From: Sphaerodactylus townsendi
Lineage: Eukaryota
Assembly (NCBI RefSeq): GCF_021028975.2
Contig: NC_059438.1
Coordinates: 26,040,001-26,104,000 of the forward strand
Direction: 5' to 3'
DNA: 64,000 nucleotides
Part shown: positions 8,394 through 62,943 of the stretch, in pieces
Position numbering within the stretch: position 1 is the stretch's first letter
How the letters are laid out: the number at the start of each line of letters is the position of its first letter
Notes under the pieces: model-generated
What the model saw: only the letters and a program-made list of their open reading frames with translations
Database searches by the model: none
What the model was told of the DNA's origin: nothing
Made by a program: the position numbers and the translations under genes

Positions 8394-10212
8394 GATCCTC
8401 GTGCCCTTGGAGAAGCAGGTCCTCTTTGGCACAGAGAGTCACGCACGACTGGCTTCTGGCGGAGTGCACCAGCCCACACTCTTCCCCCCACCCTCAAAAA
8501 AAGGCATAAGCAGGGCTGCCTCTGGCCAGAGTGCTGTACTAGGATCCAGAAGGCCCAGGATCAGATCCCCACTGGGCCCTGGAAGCTTGCTAGGTGACCT
8601 TGAGCCAGGCACACAGACTCAATCTAATCTACCTCCCAGGTCTGTTGTGGAGGAGAGAACCATGCGAGCCACTGTGGGCCTTCATTGTGAGGGGGGAGGA
8701 AGGTGGAAAGTATAAGTGAAATAAATATGTTGGGCTTTTTTTTAAAAAAAGGTGTGTAAACACCAGGGTTTTCCTGTTGGGGGAGCTTCTGTGGACAACA
8801 AACAGCCCACTGATCCAAGTGGTGGATGCACAGAACAAGGTGACGAAGGTAAAAAGCGTTCTCAGCAGCATACTGGATCAGGCAAGAATGCTATTTGACA
8901 CAGTGGCTGACAAGATGCTCTGGGGAGGCCGTGAAGTCCAGTGTGAGCTGTTGGATGGAAATGTTGTTGTTCAGGCTCTACTGTTGATGTTTTCTTCACC
9001 ACCTAGAGGAAACCCACATACACACAGTGCATCTGCAGAAGTAGGCTCTGGTCCACAAAAGCGCCTGCTGGCATGAAAACTTTTTAGCCTGTAACATGTC
9101 CCAAGGTGGGAGGATGCTGCTTTCCCTCTGGCAAAGTGCCACCAGCCTTGGTGTTTGCGTGCTGGAAAAGATTGGCAGTTGTCCTCTTCTGCTGGGATTT
9201 GCAGACTTTTGTATGCGGGATTGAGGAGGCAGCTTGTTAAGCTTTTGGGGCAACTTTTTAAGCCCCTGTGGCATTACAGTGGCCCGCCCACCAGCATGTC
9301 AGGTTGTGAAAACTTTCCCAGTTCAATGTGTTGTTTGAGATGTTGCAGGCCTTTTGTGGTTTTACAGATGCTGGAAGAGGAGTGGTTTTTCTTTGGCTGC
9401 AAGGAGTGGTGACTTTTCACATGTTAAATAATTGCACGGAGATATTTACTGTGTCCCCTCTCAGTCTGCTGTGCCTTTTGTGCCTGCTCTGTGCATTCAC
9501 CCTGCAGAAGAAATCCTCCTGCACGTGACCACTAAGGCTGAATTAGATCCTCTCTTCCAATCTGCCTAAATCACCTGCTCAAGAAAGGTAACCTGAGGAG
9601 ACAGCCAGGGGACCCAGAGGAAGCAGTGCTTTTTCTCCCCCAAATGGCAATGTCCCATTCTCTCCCCTCCCAGCCCCTTGAGCTGGCACTCGGAAGAAAA
9701 AGGCCCGCACAGAAACAACAGGAGGGGCCTCTTGCCAGTGATGGGCAGGGCTGGGCCTTTATTTAGGTGTGTGTGCTTTGCTTTTCTCCCCGGCCACTGG
9801 CATCACACTGCCTCTTTCTGTCGTCTGGCCTTTGAGTCACTGCAGCACAAGGCCTTGTGAGCCTCTCCAAACACACCCTTTGGTGTGTGGTGACCCTCAA
9901 GGGTCCTCGTGCCTTTCCCTAAGCGGTTGGTCTTGTGCACACTCACAGCTGTTCTCTAAGGGCCAAGGAGATGGACAAAGGAGATTGGAGAAAACAGGGG
10001 GCACTCCTTCAGCGAGCGAGTCCGAAATCCGGACTGTCCGTGCAGGAGCTCTTCTCCATGTCCTGTTTCTGTGGCTCCAGAGGCGTGCGTTCCCTACCGA
10101 AGATGGCCGTCTCTGTGGAACCACCCTTGTCTTGGAAGGGGAACTCAGCAGCAGCCTGTGAGCGGACTGGAGTGGGGGTTCGAAATCAAGTCACTCACCT
10201 GTGGAGCTAGAC

Positions 10213-10451
10213 CAGACCTGGGCATTATACGGCCCGCGGGCCACATGCGGCCCGCCGGATGACCCTGACTGGCCCCCCTGCTGTGCTGGGAAGCGAGACA
10301 CCTTTGAAAGCCCCGCAGAAGCCAGTTGCCTTGGCTGCCGGCTTCTGCGGGGCTTTCAAAAGCGCCTCGCCCCCCTGCCTTTTGGCCTGGCCCTCCACAA
10401 TATTTTCTGTTTCTTATGCGGCCCCATGGAAAAAATAATTGCCCACCCCTG
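10213..10451. mobile_element. hAT (Charlie-like) MITE
   Basis: Termini CAGACCTGGGCA...TGCCCACCCCTG, typical cggcccgcgggccacatgcggccc subterminal motif, 8-bp TSD AGCTAGAC / AGCTGGAC (1 mismatch). Confidence 0.75.
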
Positions 10452-10523
10452 AGCTGGACAGTAGTTGGCTAATTGGCTGGTTTTGAGCACACTGTCTGCC
10501 AAGAACCTGGCTGAGATAGTAAT

Positions 10524-10529
10524 TTTATT
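10524..10529 (-). terminator. Candidate MARVELD3 polyadenylation signal
   Basis: AATAAA on the minus strand about 350 nt after the MARVELD3 stop. Confidence 0.55.
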
Positions 10530-10599
10530 GCTAGGCGCAATGCAGAGTACTGTATTTTTCCGTACAGGTATATATGATGTACAGAGGAAAGCTGCGTGA

Positions 10600-12180
10600 T
10601 GCCCGTTACCTCGCCCCCCTGGCAGGGTTGAGGCGATGTGCCTCCCCTGCCCCCCACAAAACCGTCGGCAGCCGGAAAGGGAGGGGCGTTTCCCTATAAA
10701 TGGGCCTTCCGCCTGGAAGCAGGGCCAGCAGGACGCCGCCACAGGCGCTGGCATCGCGAGTCCAAAGCAGGGAGCTCGACGCCAGGACAGCGCAATGCTC
10801 TGCGGGGGGCGGGGGCCGTCCCGTCCAGCTGACCGCACGTGCTCCCTCCCTCCCTCCCGCCCCGCCGCAGGCCGGCGCTAGAGGTCGTCGAGGCGCTTGG
10901 CTGGGAGCCGCTGCTGCGCGACCAGGGCGCGGAAGGCGCGGAGGGCCAGGACGGCGCTGGCGCAGCAGGCGAGGGCGGCCCCTCCGGCGAGCAGCCCCGC
11001 CGCCACCTCGGCCCCGTGCAGGCGGCAGTCGAAGCCGGCGTGGCCCTTGCTGCGGTAGAGGCGCTGGCGCTCCTGGCACAGCGGGGAGGCGTAGGCCTCG
11101 CCCAGGTGCCCGTAGTAGAAGAGCAGGGCCGGCACCAGGGCCAGCGCGGCGGCCGCGTCCAGGCAGGCTTCGGGCAGCAGCAGCCAGGCCGGGCAGCGCC
11201 CCAGGAGCCCCGCCGCTGCCAGACCCAGGCCGGCCCAGGCCAGCAGCGCGCCGCCCACCGCCATGGCGCCCTGGGCCGGGGGCCGCTGCAGCCGGTGGAG
11301 CTCGGCGTCCAGCCGCTGCGCCTTGGCCCCGTCCGCCCCGTCGGCGAAGCCGCTGTAGGCGCCTCCGTAGGGGTAGTAGTACGCGCTGCCCAGGCTGAAG
11401 AGGCCCGTGTAGCCGCCGGGCCCGCCGAAGGAGACGGAGCCGCAGGCGATCAGCAGCACGCCCAGCAGGCCCTGGATCAGCCGGCAGCACCCTGGGGGGA
11501 GGGGGAGGGGGCCGTCAGTCGAGCCCTTCTTCGGTGCGCGGCCCGGCCAGGAGGGCTCCCGCTCAGCCCCCTCCCGCAGGCTGGCGGTCCGGAGGGCCCA
11601 GCTCCAACCCCCGCCCGGCCACCGCAGGTCCGGCTGGCAGTCACCCAGCAGCCGGAGCGCCTGGCCAGCCGGCCTCTGCCCTTTCCGAGACCGGCGAGGG
11701 GCGGGAGCAAAGGCCACCCCGGTTCCCCGCCGGCCCCCGCGAGCTGGAACCGCCCCCTGGCCGCAGCCGTCCACCCTCGGTCGTCGCCCCGCCGCCTCTC
11801 ACCTCGGGCCGTGCACAGCCAGCCGCAGCGCGCACGGCTCAGGAGCGGCTCGTCCGAAGGGGCGGCCCGACTGCAAGGAACGAGAAGTGCGCGGGTCAAG
11901 GCCGGGCCAGGCGAAGGGGGCCGCGCGTGGCCGCCCCCCAATCCTCCCCCCAACCCAACCCAACCCACCTGACCGCCCGGGCCTCGGCCATGAGGGGCGC
12001 CCTTCGAGCGGCGGAAGGGCCGGGGCGGAGTCGCACTTCGTACCTGCTTCCCGGGGCGTCATCCGCCCGAGCTTGCGCCGGCCACCTGGGCTGGGAGGAG
12101 GGCTGGGAAGGCGGCGCCCGTCTCACTCAAGGTCCGTCTGGGGGGTGCGCGGCGGCTGCGAGGCCGTGGACCCGTATTTT
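10600..12180. promoter_or_regulatory. CpG island covering the whole MARVELD3 gene and its promoter
   Basis: Very high GC and dense CpG, with a GC box (ggggcggag) near 12022. Confidence 0.8.
10878..11991 (-). CDS. MARVELD3: MARVEL domain-containing protein 3 (tight junction), predicted 234 aa
   Basis: Exons 11991-11969 (ATG...GTC AG|gtgggt), 11870-11803 (…RARCGWLCTAR, compare human HKCKYLCTGR) and 11491-10878 (GCCRLIQGLLGVLLIACGSVSF..GGYTG..YYYPYGGAYSGF..CQERQRLYRSKG..C.LHGAE). Phases 2/1 match; total 705 nt. The first-exon assignment is less certain than exons 2-3. Confidence 0.9.
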
Positions 12181-43649: not shown

Positions 43650-44816
43650 ATGCTGAAGCTACATCGGCTGAAAATCCCTGTGATCCTGGCACTGCAAGCA
43701 GCTGCTCTCATCTACTTCTTTCAGCTCCACACCTGGAACAGCGCCCAGAAGGAGCCGCCAGCCCAGACGCATGTCCTCCTCGTCTCCTCCTGGAGGTCTG
43801 GGTCCTCCTTTGTGGGCCAGCTCTTCAGCCAGCATCCAGACGTCTTCTACTTGATGGAGCCGGCCTGGCACGTGTGGGCAGCTATGCACCAGAGTAATGC
43901 CAAGGTGCTACAGATGGCGGTTCGGGACCTCATCCGGTCCGTCTTCAAGTGCGACATGTCAGTGTTCGATGCTTACATGTCTGAGCAGAGGAACCAGACA
44001 GGGCTCTTCCAGTGGGAGGCCAGCCGGGCCCTGTGCTCCCCTCCGGCCTGTGACCTTTTCCAGCGCAGTGACATCATCTCCAAACGCGCCTGCAAGACCC
44101 TCTGTGGCAAGTACCCTTTCCTCAAGGTCGCCGTGGCTTGCAAGACATACAGCCACGTGGTCCTGAAGGAGGTCCGGCTCTTTAACCTTCGGGCACTCTA
44201 CCCTCTCTTTGCTGACCCCTCCTTGAACCTGAAGGTCATCCACTTGGTCCGGGACCCCAGGGCTGTCTTCCGCTCCCGGGAGCACACAGCAGGCGAGCTG
44301 GCCCAGGACAGCGCCATTGTGGTGGGGCACCACAGTCAGCTGCCGGAAACGAAGCCTTACGCTGTGATGCGCGAAATCTGCAAAAGCCACATCGAGATCT
44401 ACACTCAGGGCAGCTGTGCCCTTTCCGGCCTCCTCGAGGGCCGCTACCTGTTAGTGCGTTACGAAGATATCGTCCGGGATCCTCTGGCCACGGTTGTCCA
44501 ACTGTACAGATTTGCCGGGCTCCGCTTCACTCGCCGCCTCAAGACCTGGGTGCACAACATCACCCACGGGGAGGGTCTTGGTACACAGGCCTTTGACGTT
44601 GGGTCCCGGGATGCAGTGAATGTGTCCCAGGCCTGGAGGAAGACCCTTCCTTACCCCAAAGTGGCAAAGCTGCAGGAGGCATGCAAGGACGCCATGGAGG
44701 TATTGGGCTACAGGCTGGTAAGTTCTAAGGAAGAACAGAGCAATATATCACTGAACCTCTTACATGCTCAGAAGTCCCTTACCAGGCTGGGGGAAAAGCT
44801 GAGCCAATGCAGATAG
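43650..44816 (+). CDS. CHST4: Carbohydrate (GlcNAc-6-O) sulfotransferase 4, 388 aa, single coding exon
   Basis: Acceptor cttcccctcccag|GCTGCCATG, N-terminal TM segment, 5'-PSB SSWRSGSSFVGQLF..HPDVFYLMEPAWHVW and 3'-PB HLVRDPRAVFRSRE. RAVFRSRE, FQWEASR, RYLLVRYED and the position next to TAT favour CHST4 over CHST5/6. Confidence 0.9.
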   Translation: MLKLHRLKIPVILALQAAALIYFFQLHTWNSAQKEPPAQTHVLLVSSWRSGSSFVGQLFSQHPDVFYLMEPAWHVWAAMHQSNAKVLQMAVRDLIRSVFKCDMSVFDAYMSEQRNQTGLFQWEASRALCSPPACDLFQRSDIISKRACKTLCGKYPFLKVAVACKTYSHVVLKEVRLFNLRALYPLFADPSLNLKVIHLVRDPRAVFRSREHTAGELAQDSAIVVGHHSQLPETKPYAVMREICKSHIEIYTQGSCALSGLLEGRYLLVRYEDIVRDPLATVVQLYRFAGLRFTRRLKTWVHNITHGEGLGTQAFDVGSRDAVNVSQAWRKTLPYPKVAKLQEACKDAMEVLGYRLVSSKEEQSNISLNLLHAQKSLTRLGEKLSQCR

Positions 44817-46070
44817 AGGTCTCAGAGCCAGGATATGCCATGCAGGGCTCTTCTGTGGGCAAGAATCAAGTAGATCATGAACTCAGTCCACACACTGTTC
44901 CTGTGCTGAAAATATTGTGGGATGCCACTCCTGGGCCAGTCAGCCTCAACCCTGTAAAACTGAGGTGTGTGATTCCCTCAGCTGAACACAACCGTTACTG
45001 TCTGTTTGGCAAACAAGGTGGTTTGCGTCACATCTAACCTACAGATCAAACAAGGACATTTAGTGCACATACTCTGTGTTTAATTCTGTAATTACTTTGA
45101 ACTGCCCTGGGCACTCTTCAGGAGGGAAAAGAGGATAAAATGAGTTTAAACCACGATGAACAAGCTTGAGGCAAAGCTCCTCACTTGCAAGTCAGGAAGA
45201 CTGTCGTTCCTGGTGACGATGTGCAGGTGACAGACAGGTCCTCTGAAATTGCCTGCACAAGGCAAACAAAGTGGTTTCATTCATTAGCTGAGACTAAGGT
45301 GGGAGAGCCAGGCTCCTGACACCGGTCACTGACAGGGTCCTGGCAACAGAACCCCCCAGCAACAAATACGTTGCTTGCCTACCCCAAGTTGACCCTCCCA
45401 CACAAGGAAGTGCATCGGGGCACCCCATGCCAAGATGGCTACTATGCCTTGTCTTCAAAGCCTGAACGCAATCGGGGGGAGGGCAGGGATGCTGGGTCTT
45501 TAGTTCCCTGAACTATTGCTTGATGCTGCTGAAAAGTACAAGAGTGCAAACATGCTGATCAGAGTTGTGCGGGAGGATATCTCAACACATAATAACTTCA
45601 AAGGGTTCTCATGATCCGCGATATGACTGGAACACATCTTTGCATTAACCAGGGCGACTGGATGGCTACTGTGTGATGTCTCAATGGACTAGATAGTCTG
45701 ATCCAGCAGGAGTGCTCTTCTGCTCTTCACTAGACTTCACAAGGGCAGGCTCTCTTGTTCCCTACATCCTACAAAAGTAGAAGAGTTATTTTTGTCCCGA
45801 GATGCACTCCCTTCCCCTCGACATCTATAGTACCTGAGAGGAACTCACTGGGGAATATGTGAGAGCCGTCACTGAACGAGCACAGTGTAGGTCCTGCCAC
45901 TCCTAAGCCAGGCTCCAGTGTACACCCGGTTCTGTCACACAGAAATTCTCACCAGGTTGGCTAATTCCCAACCCTGTGAGGCACAGGGAAGGAAGCAGGG
46001 CTAACCCGCCTGCTCACCCAGCCTCAGCTAAGGAAGTCCCACCGGGACCCTCTCACACAAGGATGCAGGA

Positions 46071-49500: not shown

Positions 49501-51056
49501 GCATCCAACACAGCCCTTTTGCATTCCAGGCTGCCAGTACATCCGATGGGCATTCCAGCTTCCCCCATCGCTCCCAGCAGACGAGGCTGTCAGTCGTTCA
49601 CCCCGGTTGTCCTTTGTGACATCTGTGGGGGCCCCTGGTGCCTCCACAGCAAACCTCTAGCCACCCTCACTCAGTTGCCACCCCAGGTTCCCTGCAAAGG
49701 CTCTGAGCCACCCCCACCCCCACACACCGGCTGCAGCATCTCACCCAGCTATCCACCCCTTCCAAAGACATCAAGTTTGCCTGCTGCACTGACTCCTCCC
49801 CAAAGCTAGGTGTTGACTCCAGTGACCCCCCTGGCCCCTCAGTGGCCCCTTCCTGGATGTCTCCCCTCGGTGGCAGAGCCCTTCTTACTCCATTAAAAGC
49901 CCACCTTTCTCCCTTGAGGGGGCCAGCATGGCGGACACCCTTCCCCTGTCCTGCTTCATGCTCACAGCCAGCCCGAGGGGCAGGCCAGGCTGAGAGTCGG
50001 CAAATGGCCCAAGGCCAACCAGCCACCTTTCATGGGACAAGCAGGGATCTGGGTCTGAGTTCTGCACTGTAACCACCACAGTGTCTCATTCACCTGCTAG
50101 ACCACCCCAGGTTGGCCCACCCCTTCTCCACCCAGCAGCTAGTCAGGTGAGTGGCGGGGGGTGTCAGGTGGGAGGTCAGCCTCGGAGGTGGCTGCTGGGC
50201 CCTGCTATGTTTGGCAGACGACCGTGATGGGGGGCTTGCGGCACCTGCACCGTCCCCCGTGAGCCCTTGGCAGCCCTCAGCGGGAGTCACAGATGTGGTG
50301 GGATGGCGCTTCTGATGTGACAGACAGACAATTGTGGCACAAGGCAGACTTTATTGAATGGCAAACCTTGGAGAGGTCTGAAGACTCTGTCACCTCCCAG
50401 TAGCCACGGGGCAAAAACCACCTGGAAAGGTGTGGTCCACCTGGCAAGGTGTGCGCGCAAGTGAACTGGAGACACGGGTGAAATTTGGAGAGGCTGGTGG
50501 GATAACAGCCAGAGGCAGGCTGGGATAACAGACTGAGCGGCATGTGTGTGTACATGTGTGTGGCGGAGAAAATAGTTTGGCAGATCACGACACCTTGCCC
50601 GTTTCTCCTGCAAGGAGTCTAAAAACGGCTTACAAACTCCTCCCCTTCCCCACAAGAGACACCTTGTGAGGTAGGCATGGCTGAGAGAGTTCTGTGAGAA
50701 CTGTGGCTAGCCCAAGGTCACCCAGCAAGCTGCATGTGGAGGAGCTGGGAAGTATCCAAATGTGGGCATCAAACCATGTGCCAATGCTGTAAATTTAATG
50801 TTCACCAAGAGTTCAGCCAGCCACAGTTGGCTGACTACTGAGTTGAACGAATGGGAAACATCACATTCTAGATTCTGGGGCATGTATAATCGAGAGCCCC
50901 TAGGCCAGTGGTGGCGAACCAATTGGCCATGCTGGCAGGGGGTGATGGGAATTGTAGTCCATGAACATCTGGAGTGCTATAGGTTTGCCACCATGGCCCT
51001 AGGCTGTAGAGATTGAAAACCAGCTGTGACTCAGTTCTGGGAACAGACTTGAGCAG

Positions 51057-51062
51057 TTTATT
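51057..51062 (-). terminator. Candidate TERF2IP polyadenylation signal
   Basis: AATAAA on the minus strand about 210 nt after the stop. Confidence 0.55.
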
Positions 51063-51268
51063 GCCAATTCAAAAATCACCAAACTGCTACAACCGTGATT
51101 TCAGTCAGCAGTACTATCTGCCACAACAGTCATTTCAGGCAAAACAGAGATTAGGATGCAAGTCCTTGGCCTTGGCATCAGGCGTGGCGTGCCTCTGTTA
51201 CCGCAAACTGCCCACGGCCTCCACAAAGGAAAATGTGCACCAAAAAGGAGCGCTGAACACAACACAAA

Positions 51269-53109
51269 CTAATTCTTCCTGAAAGCCACCCGCCTGTTCA
51301 CGTTCTCTTTTCCATACTTGGCTATAAGCTGGCTTCTGAGTTGATTGTCACCTGTCAGCAAGTCTAAGTCATCCTGTCTGGTCCAAAGAGGGGGCCGGTC
51401 CTTGGAATGTGGGCCACTCCGCAGGCAACGGGCCACTGCTGCGACCTCCCCGCTGGTTTTCAAAAAAGCTTGAGCCACAGTTTCCAGGTCCACCCCACAC
51501 TCTTCCATGAAGCGCTTCATGTCTTCCAGGGCCGCCTGCTCAGAAGAGGGCGCTGCAGGCGGGTCTCCTCCCAGGGGCTCATTCTGAAGTGCAGCAGGAC
51601 CTTCTGGAGACATCAGCTTTGCCCCCTGGGTTCTGGAACTGGGGAACGTTTCTTCAGACGTTGCAGGCGATTTCAGCAGTGTCTCTCCCGAAGGGCTCTC
51701 ACTTTCCCACTAGAAGCGGCCAGAGGAAGAACATTGCAGGATGAGCATCTCCAACAGGCTGATGTATTGTCGAAGGCTTTCACAGCCGGATTCAACCGGT
51801 TGTTGTGGGCTTTCCGGGCTGTGTGGCCGTGGTCTGGTAGATCTTGTTCCTAATGTTTTGCCTGCCTCTGTGGCTGGCATCTTCAGAGGGGTATCATGGA
51901 GAGGTCCCACACAGCCCGGAAAACCCTCAACAACCAGTCCAACAGGCTGCTTCTTGATGGGGTTCAGAACGGTTCTCCCTAGAACATGCTGTGCAGAGAA
52001 CCACATTCGCAATGGCCAAAACAGACACCTAGCTACCATGGCCAGGCTCTAAAAGGGAAGATCTGGCCAGCACTCACTTTTCTTTGGACAGCCGGCTCGC
52101 TTGGCCAGGCCAGGAGCTGCAGGAACAGGAACAGCAGGGCTTTTAAGCATACCAAAGAGGTCTATAATGGACGCTCACTCAAACATCAAACACAAAAGCA
52201 GAACAAGCAAACTGATTACGCACTCAGGCGTCAGTACCTCATTGCTCTCAAATTCTTGATTTGCCAGCTGGAAAATGCTGGGAGCCTTTGATCCTTTTGT
52301 CATGTGCCTTGAGTCCTTTTGCTGGGGTTCACCCATTGCTTTCTTTCTCTGTGATGCCGCTTTAAAGAGAGAAAAAGACGTCGAGCTTCAGTCACCACTC
52401 TCATGTCTTGGACAGTAACTGTTAAGAGCTGAGTCCGGTAGCACCAAAAATCCCTGCCGGTCCCTAAGACTCTGATCTAACCACTCTCGTGCTGCAATTA
52501 AACAACCTTATGCCTTGCAACAGTGGAGCAGAAGTCACCAGGTGCTCTGGAAACCTTGCCCAGCGGATGGACTCCTGCACAGCTAAACGAATTGGCTGTG
52601 GCATTCTCTATATGACAACCATGGTTGGCGGTATGTCAGACTAACTGTGGGAGACACAAACTGCCAGCCCGTAAGCTTACAGGCTGACCTTGTGCCATTC
52701 GCAGTCTCAGACTAAACCAGCTTACAGGGTTGTTGTCAGGATGATGGGCAGCATTTGGGTCCCCAGTGGGCCGAGTACACACGAAGTAGCTACATAAATG
52801 CATTTCTTGCAATGACACGTGCAATGGGACAGGCTGGCCTGGCTGGGGAAGCTCCTCGCACGAACCCCGCGAATGGGCGTTTCGCCAGAAAGAACGAGCG
52901 TCGGAAAGAAACGACAGGAGGCACAACACTGCAGGGCGGGGCGGGCAGCGGAGGAAGGGACGGCCGGGAAGAAAAGGAGCCGAGGACGGGGGCCCAGCGC
53001 TGCAGCCGGAGGGAAGGAGGCGGGGAGGCGGGCCGGGCTTACGGGGACGACGCTCCCGCCGCAGGACGTCCAGCGCCGGCCACGCGGAACAGAGAGCCGC
53101 TGCGCGCAT
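51269..53109 (-). CDS. TERF2IP: Telomeric repeat-binding factor 2-interacting protein (RAP1), N-terminally truncated form (209 aa from exon-1 ATG or 179 aa from exon-2 ATG)
   Basis: Exon 3, 51709-51269, encodes the RCT domain (DLETVAQAFLKTSGEV..PLWTRQDDLDL..LIAKYGKENVNRRVAFRKN*). Exon 2, 52359-52238 (…IFQLANQEFESNE, phase 1 in, phase 0 out). Candidate exon 1, 53109-53043 (67 nt, C|gtaagc, phase 1). Head-to-head with KARS1 as in other vertebrates. Confidence 0.85.
51762..51937 (-). mobile_element. Penelope-like fragment in TERF2IP intron 2 with degenerate hammerhead core
   Basis: Same family as 13938-14335. Flanked by a 12-bp direct repeat TCCAACAGGCTG (51750-51761, 51938-51949). Minus strand reads CTGAAGATGCC...GGCAAAACATT. 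Confidence 0.75.
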
Positions 53110-53226
53110 GCTCAGAGCTCCTCCCGCCCGCGGCTCGCGCTCCAGCGGCGACAGCTACTGCTGCGCAGGCGCAGTGATGGGGAGCGGAACACGCTTCCGC
53201 TTCCGGAACTGTCTGCGGCCGGCAAG

Positions 53227-53235
<9 letters not shown>
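53043..53235. promoter_or_regulatory. TERF2IP-KARS1 bidirectional CpG-island promoter
   Basis: NRF1-like TGCGCAGGCGCA at 53162-53173, tandem ETS/GABP CTTCCGCTTCCGG at 53194-53206, YY1-like CAAGATGGCGGC over the KARS1 ATG. Confidence 0.8.

Positions 53236-62943
<9,708 letters not shown>

Follow-up and report, generated by a model that had tools for sequence, protein, structure and literature searches.

The TERF2IP locus of the gecko Sphaerodactylus townsendi raises the question of what remains of RAP1, called the most conserved subunit of shelterin, in a gene from which the N-terminal half of the protein is missing. RAP1's BRCT domain binds the vWA domain of KU70, the Myb domain binds DNA beside DNA-PK and the C-terminal RCT domain binds the RAP1-binding motif of TRF2 (PMC12221994). 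The BRCT and Myb contacts with KU70 and DNA were shown in 2025 to stop LIG4 from joining telomeres, and deletion of either domain abolishes both KU binding in vitro and the block of LIG4 recruitment (PMC12221994). The RCT is required for the binding of Epc1 of the TIP60/p400 complex, the mouse substitution I312R frees RAP1 from TRF2 (PMC8973845), and the partners of the RCT are bound mainly via its helices 1 and 2 (PMC8653790). Here we have analyzed a 64-kb window of S. townsendi DNA (the whole stretch studied; all coordinates are window positions), in which TERF2IP lies head-to-head with KARS1. Our answer, to which we assign a probability of about 0.8, is that this is the orthologous RAP1 gene minus BRCT and Myb, the coding part of its exon 1 having been lost. 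Short TERF2IP models are already present in RefSeq; no paper describing the loss was found in the literature searched.

The gene is read from the minus strand. Exon 3 (51709..51269) follows an AG acceptor (ttctag), comprises 146 codons with a disordered linker of about 65 codons and the RCT domain of about 90 codons, and terminates in TAG. It is separated by intron 2 (51710..52237, 528 nt, GT..AG boundaries) from exon 2 (52359..52238, 122 nt, acceptor aaag, donor gtactg), whose sequence is ASQRKKAMGEPQQKDSRHMTKGSKAPSIFQLANQEFESNE. An ATG at 52336-52334 in exon 2 stands in a Kozak-strong context (GCAATGG), in phase with exon 3, and is followed downstream by the motif GSKAPSIFQLANQEFESNE. A short first exon of 67 nt (53043..53109, minus strand) runs from ATG 53109 to a donor gtaagc after C and joins exon 2 in frame across intron 1 (52360..53042, 683 nt), the place where an exon for BRCT and Myb would be expected and where there is none. 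On the plus strand the KARS1 ATG was placed at 53227, with the coding part of KARS1 exon 1 at 53227..53301 (donor gtgagt), which leaves exactly 867 nt between this ATG and TERF2IP exon 2. The bidirectional KARS1/TERF2IP core promoter (53110..53226) contains two CCGGAAG (ETS-like) boxes in a region with a GC content of 0.70-0.76. The three-exon model is identical to RefSeq XP_048371871.1 (TERF2IP isoform X1, 209 aa), of which the 67-nt exon is the first; a protein search with exon 3 also returned XP_048371873.1 (isoform X2, 179 aa, 100% identical), which starts at the exon-2 ATG. An earlier reading of the bare sequence, called here the original prediction, had proposed intact in-phase exons 2 and 3 ending in an RCT, the 867-nt gap, the in-frame 67-nt exon and the strong start in exon 2, and it was right in each of these, coordinates included; for the exons and the RCT the agreement extends to translation, Pfam Rap1_C and PDB entry 3K6G.

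Neither the N-terminal BRCT nor the central Myb domain of RAP1 is present at the locus. Pfam searches of the open reading frames of the 867-nt interval revealed no BRCT (PF16589) and no Myb (PF08914), and tblastn with ten full-length RAP1 proteins from lizard, tuatara, turtle, bird and mammal gave real matches only to exons 2 and 3. A hidden Markov model (HMM) of BRCT plus Myb, built from the exon-1 part of 32 full-length RAP1 proteins, gave a best E value of only 4.4 against all six frames of the window; as positive controls, Zootoca gave 1e-84 and a further squamate contig 3e-72. The claim that no BRCT- or Myb-like frame lies between exon 2 and KARS1 thus withstood three kinds of search. The string ARSGSLFRV, in which a faint resemblance to the start of BRCT had been seen, did not: 60-80 of 300 shuffles equalled its score, which is the level of chance. 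A tblastn match of residues 87-147 of bird RAP1 to 53048-52875 (E 7e-4) was rejected as compositional noise. The frame is Pro/Ala-rich, its Smith-Waterman score of 37 was equalled by 80 of 300 shuffles (60-80 of 300 overall), other full-length RAP1 proteins score under the shuffle mean on it and the HMM sees nothing there.

Such an absence could be produced by the assembly if a GC-rich exon 1 with BRCT and Myb had been dropped or collapsed, and the interval is indeed a 70-76% GC island; GC-rich first exons are often missing from sauropsid assemblies. Logan contigs of four public runs, judged genomic because their repeats reach depths in the millions, were placed on 50800-54200. In run X1 a single contig of 1662 nt spans 51910-53571, gapless and with zero differences, at a depth of 22.7 (19.5 and 24.1 in its neighbours). 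Run X3, from another sample, covers 51910-53032 and 53034-53525 in two contigs that differ by two substitutions, lack 1 nt at 52988 and carry an extra 10 nt at 53505. The low-depth run X5 leaves 52839-53057 uncovered. Unitig-type contigs of two individuals therefore bridge the interval at normal depth with zero or two differences, the sole N run of the window lies far off at 61604-61759, and the gapless assemblies of Heteronotia and Gekko kuhli share the short architecture in collinearity with S. townsendi. At least one sequenced individual is independent of that in the assembly, so loss or collapse of an exon is excluded for practical purposes, and we regard an artefact as the least probable of all the explanations considered, so that the check for a deletion over 52360-53226 came out in favour of the short gene. 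The polymorphisms of run X3 are ordinary: the deletion at 52988 falls in TERF2IP intron 1 and the insertion at 53505, TCTTCTCTTC, in KARS1 intron 1.

What is left of the protein is a RAP1-type RCT domain. The last ~90 residues of exon 3 match Pfam Rap1_C (PF11626) with an E value of 9.6e-12 (cutoff 24.2 bits), and the exon matches the human RAP1 RCT in the RAP1-TRF2 crystal structure (PDB 3K6G, residues 11-97 of 111) with an E value of 9e-20. An AlphaFold2 model computed from a 31-sequence alignment has six predicted helices in residues 89-178 at a predicted local distance difference test score (pLDDT) of ~90, preceded by a short predicted helix at residues 21-30, which corresponds to the exon-2 motif, and a disordered linker. 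Chains A and B of 3K6G were the top PDB matches of this model in Foldseek (probability 1.00, 44-46% identity), and yeast Rap1 RCT structures were weak matches at ranks 3-7. Helices 1-2 of the gecko RCT read DMKRFMEEFGVDLATVTQAFLK, virtually the same as in full-length squamate RAP1, and the position aligned to the second Ile of human 'KII', which we take to be human I318 or mouse I312, is Met or Ile across squamates. Within 51400-51520 (residues 103-112) S. townsendi has EEC for EEF, DLETV for DLATV and VAQAF for VTQAF; at these three positions no difference exists among the remaining geckos and the full-length squamates.

The short gene is shared with other geckos. When the 209-aa protein served as query in a word-based search, TERF2IP proteins with Rap1_C alone were found in Euleptes europaea (174 aa), Gekko japonicus (185 aa), G. 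kuhli (208 aa) and Heteronotia binoei (179 aa), and precomputed Pfam assignments give PF11626 alone for all five gecko proteins, whose species fall in Sphaerodactylidae and Gekkonidae. Each of the three other gecko loci examined (G. japonicus, G. kuhli and Heteronotia) is head-to-head with a KARS-type gene, and the BRCT/Myb HMM found no match in them over 10 kb on each side; those of Heteronotia and G. kuhli are without N gaps. From promoter to exon 2 the DNA of S. townsendi and G. kuhli is collinear in three blocks (KARS1 exon 1 with the promoter to ATG 53109; an intronic block; 350 nt ending in exon 2), and the same two end blocks lie 5.7 kb apart in Heteronotia. The truncation, proposed for S. 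townsendi, is therefore real there and not peculiar to it, being common to both families. A survey of TERF2IP across geckos, other squamates and tuatara, suggested with the original prediction, found the five geckos to be RCT-only and lacertids, Pogona and tuatara to have full-length proteins.

By position the gene is orthologous to RAP1/TERF2IP. A KARS-type gene was called upstream of TERF2IP in each squamate locus examined, and the order KARS1, TERF2IP, sulfotransferase is repeated in eight other squamate loci. The third member of this series is in S. townsendi a single-exon carbohydrate sulfotransferase gene (43650-44849, plus strand) with 80% identity over 402 aa to its counterpart in Gekko japonicus, where it also lies 3' of TERF2IP, which confirms the synteny on that side. 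Orthology by descent is seen in a maximum-likelihood tree of the exon-3 region, in which geckos form a clade with a support of 100/99 and divide into Sphaerodactylus with Euleptes and Heteronotia with Gekko, the topology of the species tree. The terminal branch of S. townsendi (0.37) is the longest among geckos.

Is the short gene still in use? A decaying remnant, a transcribed pseudogene from which no functional protein is made, would fit a linker that evolves almost neutrally (dN/dS 0.6-1.0 among geckos; Nei-Gojobori, exon 3 alone), a branch that is longer in S. townsendi than in any other gecko, together with changes private to it in helices 1-2, and the viability of mouse Rap1 knock-outs. 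Against decay, all five geckos, which represent two families, retain an unbroken frame; conservation extends to the start codon with its Kozak context, to the splice sites and to the exon-2 motif, and the RCT has a dN/dS of 0.19-0.27 among geckos, close to the 0.08-0.22 of full-length lineages. Between S. townsendi and G. japonicus, 22.5 differences fall on 203 non-synonymous sites of the RCT and 25.5 on 61 synonymous ones (Fisher p 4e-7). We consider a remnant very improbable. The RCT is under purifying selection, as the dN/dS check called for on the exons showed for exon 3, and the value of 0.19-0.27 implies that the short gene is old. The dS of 0.6-0.7 between the two families likewise indicates that the truncated state has been maintained for a long time; Sphaerodactylidae and Gekkonidae split on the order of 100 million years ago. 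With the bridging contigs, the same architecture in four other geckos and this selection, the proposal of a natural domain deletion stands.

A different way of keeping the lost functions would be relocation, BRCT and Myb surviving elsewhere as a separate gene or on a distant exon spliced to 52359. Exon 2 does still have a good acceptor, and its frame is open upstream of the ATG; the acceptor would be retained in any case because of the promoter-proximal exon 1. Neither the 64 kb of the window nor the 10 kb flanking the gene on each side in the three other geckos contains BRCT or Myb, the upstream side is occupied by KARS1 on the other strand, and RefSeq pipelines produced only short models in three gecko species. 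When a protein collection that includes four gecko proteomes was searched with the BRCT+Myb half of the Zootoca protein, no gecko was among the best 120 of 257 matches (proteins of 207-660 aa); the best squamate matches among these 120 were lacertids, Pogona, two unnamed Logan proteins and tuatara. The genome-level check is of this extent, which leaves relocation some room. The Logan proteins with BRCT and Myb (P0221, P0222) were considered as possible gecko proteins and rejected. On the contig of P0221 (5.5 kb) lies a whole TERF2IP of three exons; its exon 3 shares only 46-53% identity with that of geckos and is placed outside their clade, so the gene comes from another squamate and is not a gecko paralogue. 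Taken together, the negative result in the protein collection and the position of the P0221 gene make a displaced gecko BRCT/Myb gene unlikely, and we hold relocation to be quite improbable. The P0221 contig belongs to run SRR31946008, and the gene on it (L008:487-2829) is both complete and compact, encoding BRCT, Myb and RCT. A GC-rich stretch at 48.8-50.4 kb, 3' of the gene, was examined as a displaced exon and rejected, being without a RAP1-like open reading frame.

Where translation of the short gene begins is indicated by comparison among geckos. A promoter block conserved in S. townsendi, G. kuhli and Heteronotia comprises the reverse KARS1 ATG, TTCCGGAAGCGGAAGCG and GAGCATGCGCGCAGC, which upholds the promoter shared by KARS1 and TERF2IP in the original prediction; it includes GCATGCGC, which we take to be an NRF1-type promoter element. 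ATG 53109 sits inside the conserved motif GAGCATGCGCGCAGC, and conservation ends immediately after ATGCGCGCAGC, with the predicted peptides diverging from there (MRAAALCSAW... and MRAAGPRGPH...). The conserved promoter motif and the divergent peptides suggest that the upstream ATG owes its conservation more probably to the DNA motif than to use as a start codon, and that the exon-2 ATG is the likelier start. The latter (A/G at -3, G at +4) and the acceptors of exons 2 and 3 are kept in all four geckos with DNA available; the aligned Zootoca codon is AAG (Lys). The exon-2 motif GSKAPxIFQLANQEFE is identical at 16-17 of 19 positions among geckos and recognisable out to birds. Translation from the exon-2 ATG is thus the most likely on conservation, and the 67-nt exon would be either a 5' untranslated region or a non-conserved N-terminal extension of 22 residues. 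The main product might instead be the 209-residue isoform from ATG 53109, whose added N-terminal peptide would be new and have its own function: this ATG is kept in three geckos with a purine at -3, and the models of S. townsendi and G. kuhli have it in frame. The shared frame counts for little, because gene predictors choose in-frame donors. The ATG is moreover embedded in a conserved promoter-type palindrome, the peptide beyond MRAA is unrelated between species, and the models of Heteronotia, G. japonicus and Euleptes begin in exon 2. We therefore regard the 209-residue product as unlikely, at perhaps one chance in a handful, and take the protein that starts in exon 2 as the likelier main one.

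For a TERF2IP reduced to exons 2 and 3 we propose the following course. The entire coding part of the ancestral exon 1, with BRCT and Myb, would have been lost before Gekkonidae and Sphaerodactylidae diverged, and the gene would still be driven by the bidirectional promoter it has in common with KARS1. A short first exon, probably non-coding, would be spliced to exon 2, and translation from the exon-2 ATG would yield a product of ~179 residues in which a short helix that is conserved (IFQLANQEFE) and a disordered linker precede an intact RCT of six helices. This RCT would still dock on the RAP1-binding motif of TRF2 and may bind other partners, such as Epc1 of TIP60/p400. The short protein would be unable to make the BRCT-KU70 and Myb-DNA contacts by which mammalian RAP1 keeps LIG4 from being recruited to DNA-PK at telomeres. 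Gecko RAP1 is probably still a TRF2-docked, perhaps TIP60/p400-binding adaptor that contacts neither KU nor DNA, the docking being predicted from sequence conservation.

Several points weigh against this picture. The genome-wide absence of BRCT and Myb beyond the 64-kb window was gauged via the protein collection (best 120 of 257 matches), and TRF2 binding and localisation at telomeres are predicted from the conserved helices 1-2, where three substitutions (F to C, A to E and T to A) are private to S. townsendi. The exon 1-2 junction, the transcription start and the start codon are those suggested by RefSeq models and conservation. Near its promoter the locus of G. japonicus is interrupted by N gaps. 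The AlphaFold2 model superposes moderately on 3K6G, with a template modelling (TM) score of 0.43-0.45, perhaps because the crystal form wraps around TRF2.

Set beside canonical vertebrate RAP1 (human, 399 aa; PDB 3K6G for the RCT-TRF2 complex, and 8RD4), the gecko gene has the same head-to-head locus with KARS1 and the same last two exons, its RCT matches 3K6G across 88 residues (E 9e-20) and FxxAxxEFE of exon 2 is conserved. It differs in being without the N-terminal half (BRCT PF16589, Myb PF08914), in an internal-Met start and in a length of 179-209 aa instead of ~380-400. The nearest laboratory counterparts are the engineered delta-BRCT and delta-Myb mutants of RAP1, in which the RCT-TRF2 interaction is left intact by the deletion (PMC12221994, PMC8973845). 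The gecko form lacks both domains by nature; it is fixed in a clade and kept by selection, and is not a laboratory allele. Budding-yeast Rap1 (PDB 3OWT, 4BJT, 3CZ6) likewise uses its RCT as a protein-recruitment module, at ~20% identity; the yeast protein however binds DNA itself through its Myb domains.

Geckos are not the only squamates with an eroded RAP1. In Thamnophis elegans and Phrynosoma platyrhinos the exon with FxxAxxEFE begins 267 nt from the KARS1 ATG with no gaps between, and the HMM found no BRCT or Myb within 10 kb on each side. In Varanus komodoensis (L006:10001-10843) BRCT is intact, and behind it a separate frame piece holds the broken remnant of a Myb domain (HMM positions 137-180, E 2.5e-4), which the gene model splices out; Hemicordylus capensis (L007:10001-10839) keeps BRCT with Myb absent by the HMM. 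These two may be true losses of Myb; for Varanus an assembly indel is also possible. TERF2IP is complete in lacertids, tuatara and Pogona, the last also an iguanian, with a protein of 396 aa. All four eroded genes resemble that of geckos in the KARS1-linked locus, the erosion of the N-terminus and the retained RCT. They differ from it in that the exon-2-like exon of Thamnophis and Phrynosoma adjoins the promoter without an upstream exon, and in that Varanus and Hemicordylus keep BRCT. On the squamate tree the N-terminus would have been eroded several times independently, because geckos are parted from the other truncated lineages by the full-length lacertids and Pogona. Among squamates there are accordingly exceptions to the published view that BRCT and Myb are found 'in all metazoans' (PMC8653790).

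We lean slightly towards the wider view that squamates have repeatedly stripped RAP1 toward an RCT-only adaptor, with BRCT and Myb fully lost in Gekkota, Thamnophis and Phrynosoma and Myb lost or broken in Varanus and Hemicordylus. On that view the RCT and the exon-2 motif would be the indispensable core, and the 'circuit breaker' that BRCT and Myb form for DNA-PK would be dispensable or replaced. In geckos, whatever holds for other squamates, the RCT alone has been kept under purifying selection since before the split of the two families, a natural separation-of-function allele. This implies that selection retains the roles of the RCT, namely docking on or stabilisation of TRF2 and possibly binding of TIP60/p400 (PMC8973845). 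For telomere biology it is of interest that what is called the most conserved shelterin subunit is naturally truncated here, and the question arises how telomeres are protected from classical end joining in geckos and apparently in some snakes and iguanians. For annotators it follows that short squamate TERF2IP models are not necessarily fragments.

Some further features were recorded in passing. TERF2IP of T. elegans (L004:9640-10800) has only two exons, 10001-10054 and 10258-10752; its models and those of T. sirtalis (P0011) are divided by a frameshift in an A-run at the extreme end of the RCT, and the Thamnophis RCT branch is very long (1.38). In Phrynosoma platyrhinos the gene (L010:9700-10140) begins in the exon-2-like exon, behind a GCGCATGCGC motif. 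At 53540-53840, 50914-51027 and about 51712-51939, the last within TERF2IP intron 2, lie high-copy interspersed repeats whose contig depth sums to millions in each of the four S. townsendi runs; the repeat at 53540-53840, within KARS1 intron 1, resembles a tRNA-derived squamate short interspersed element.

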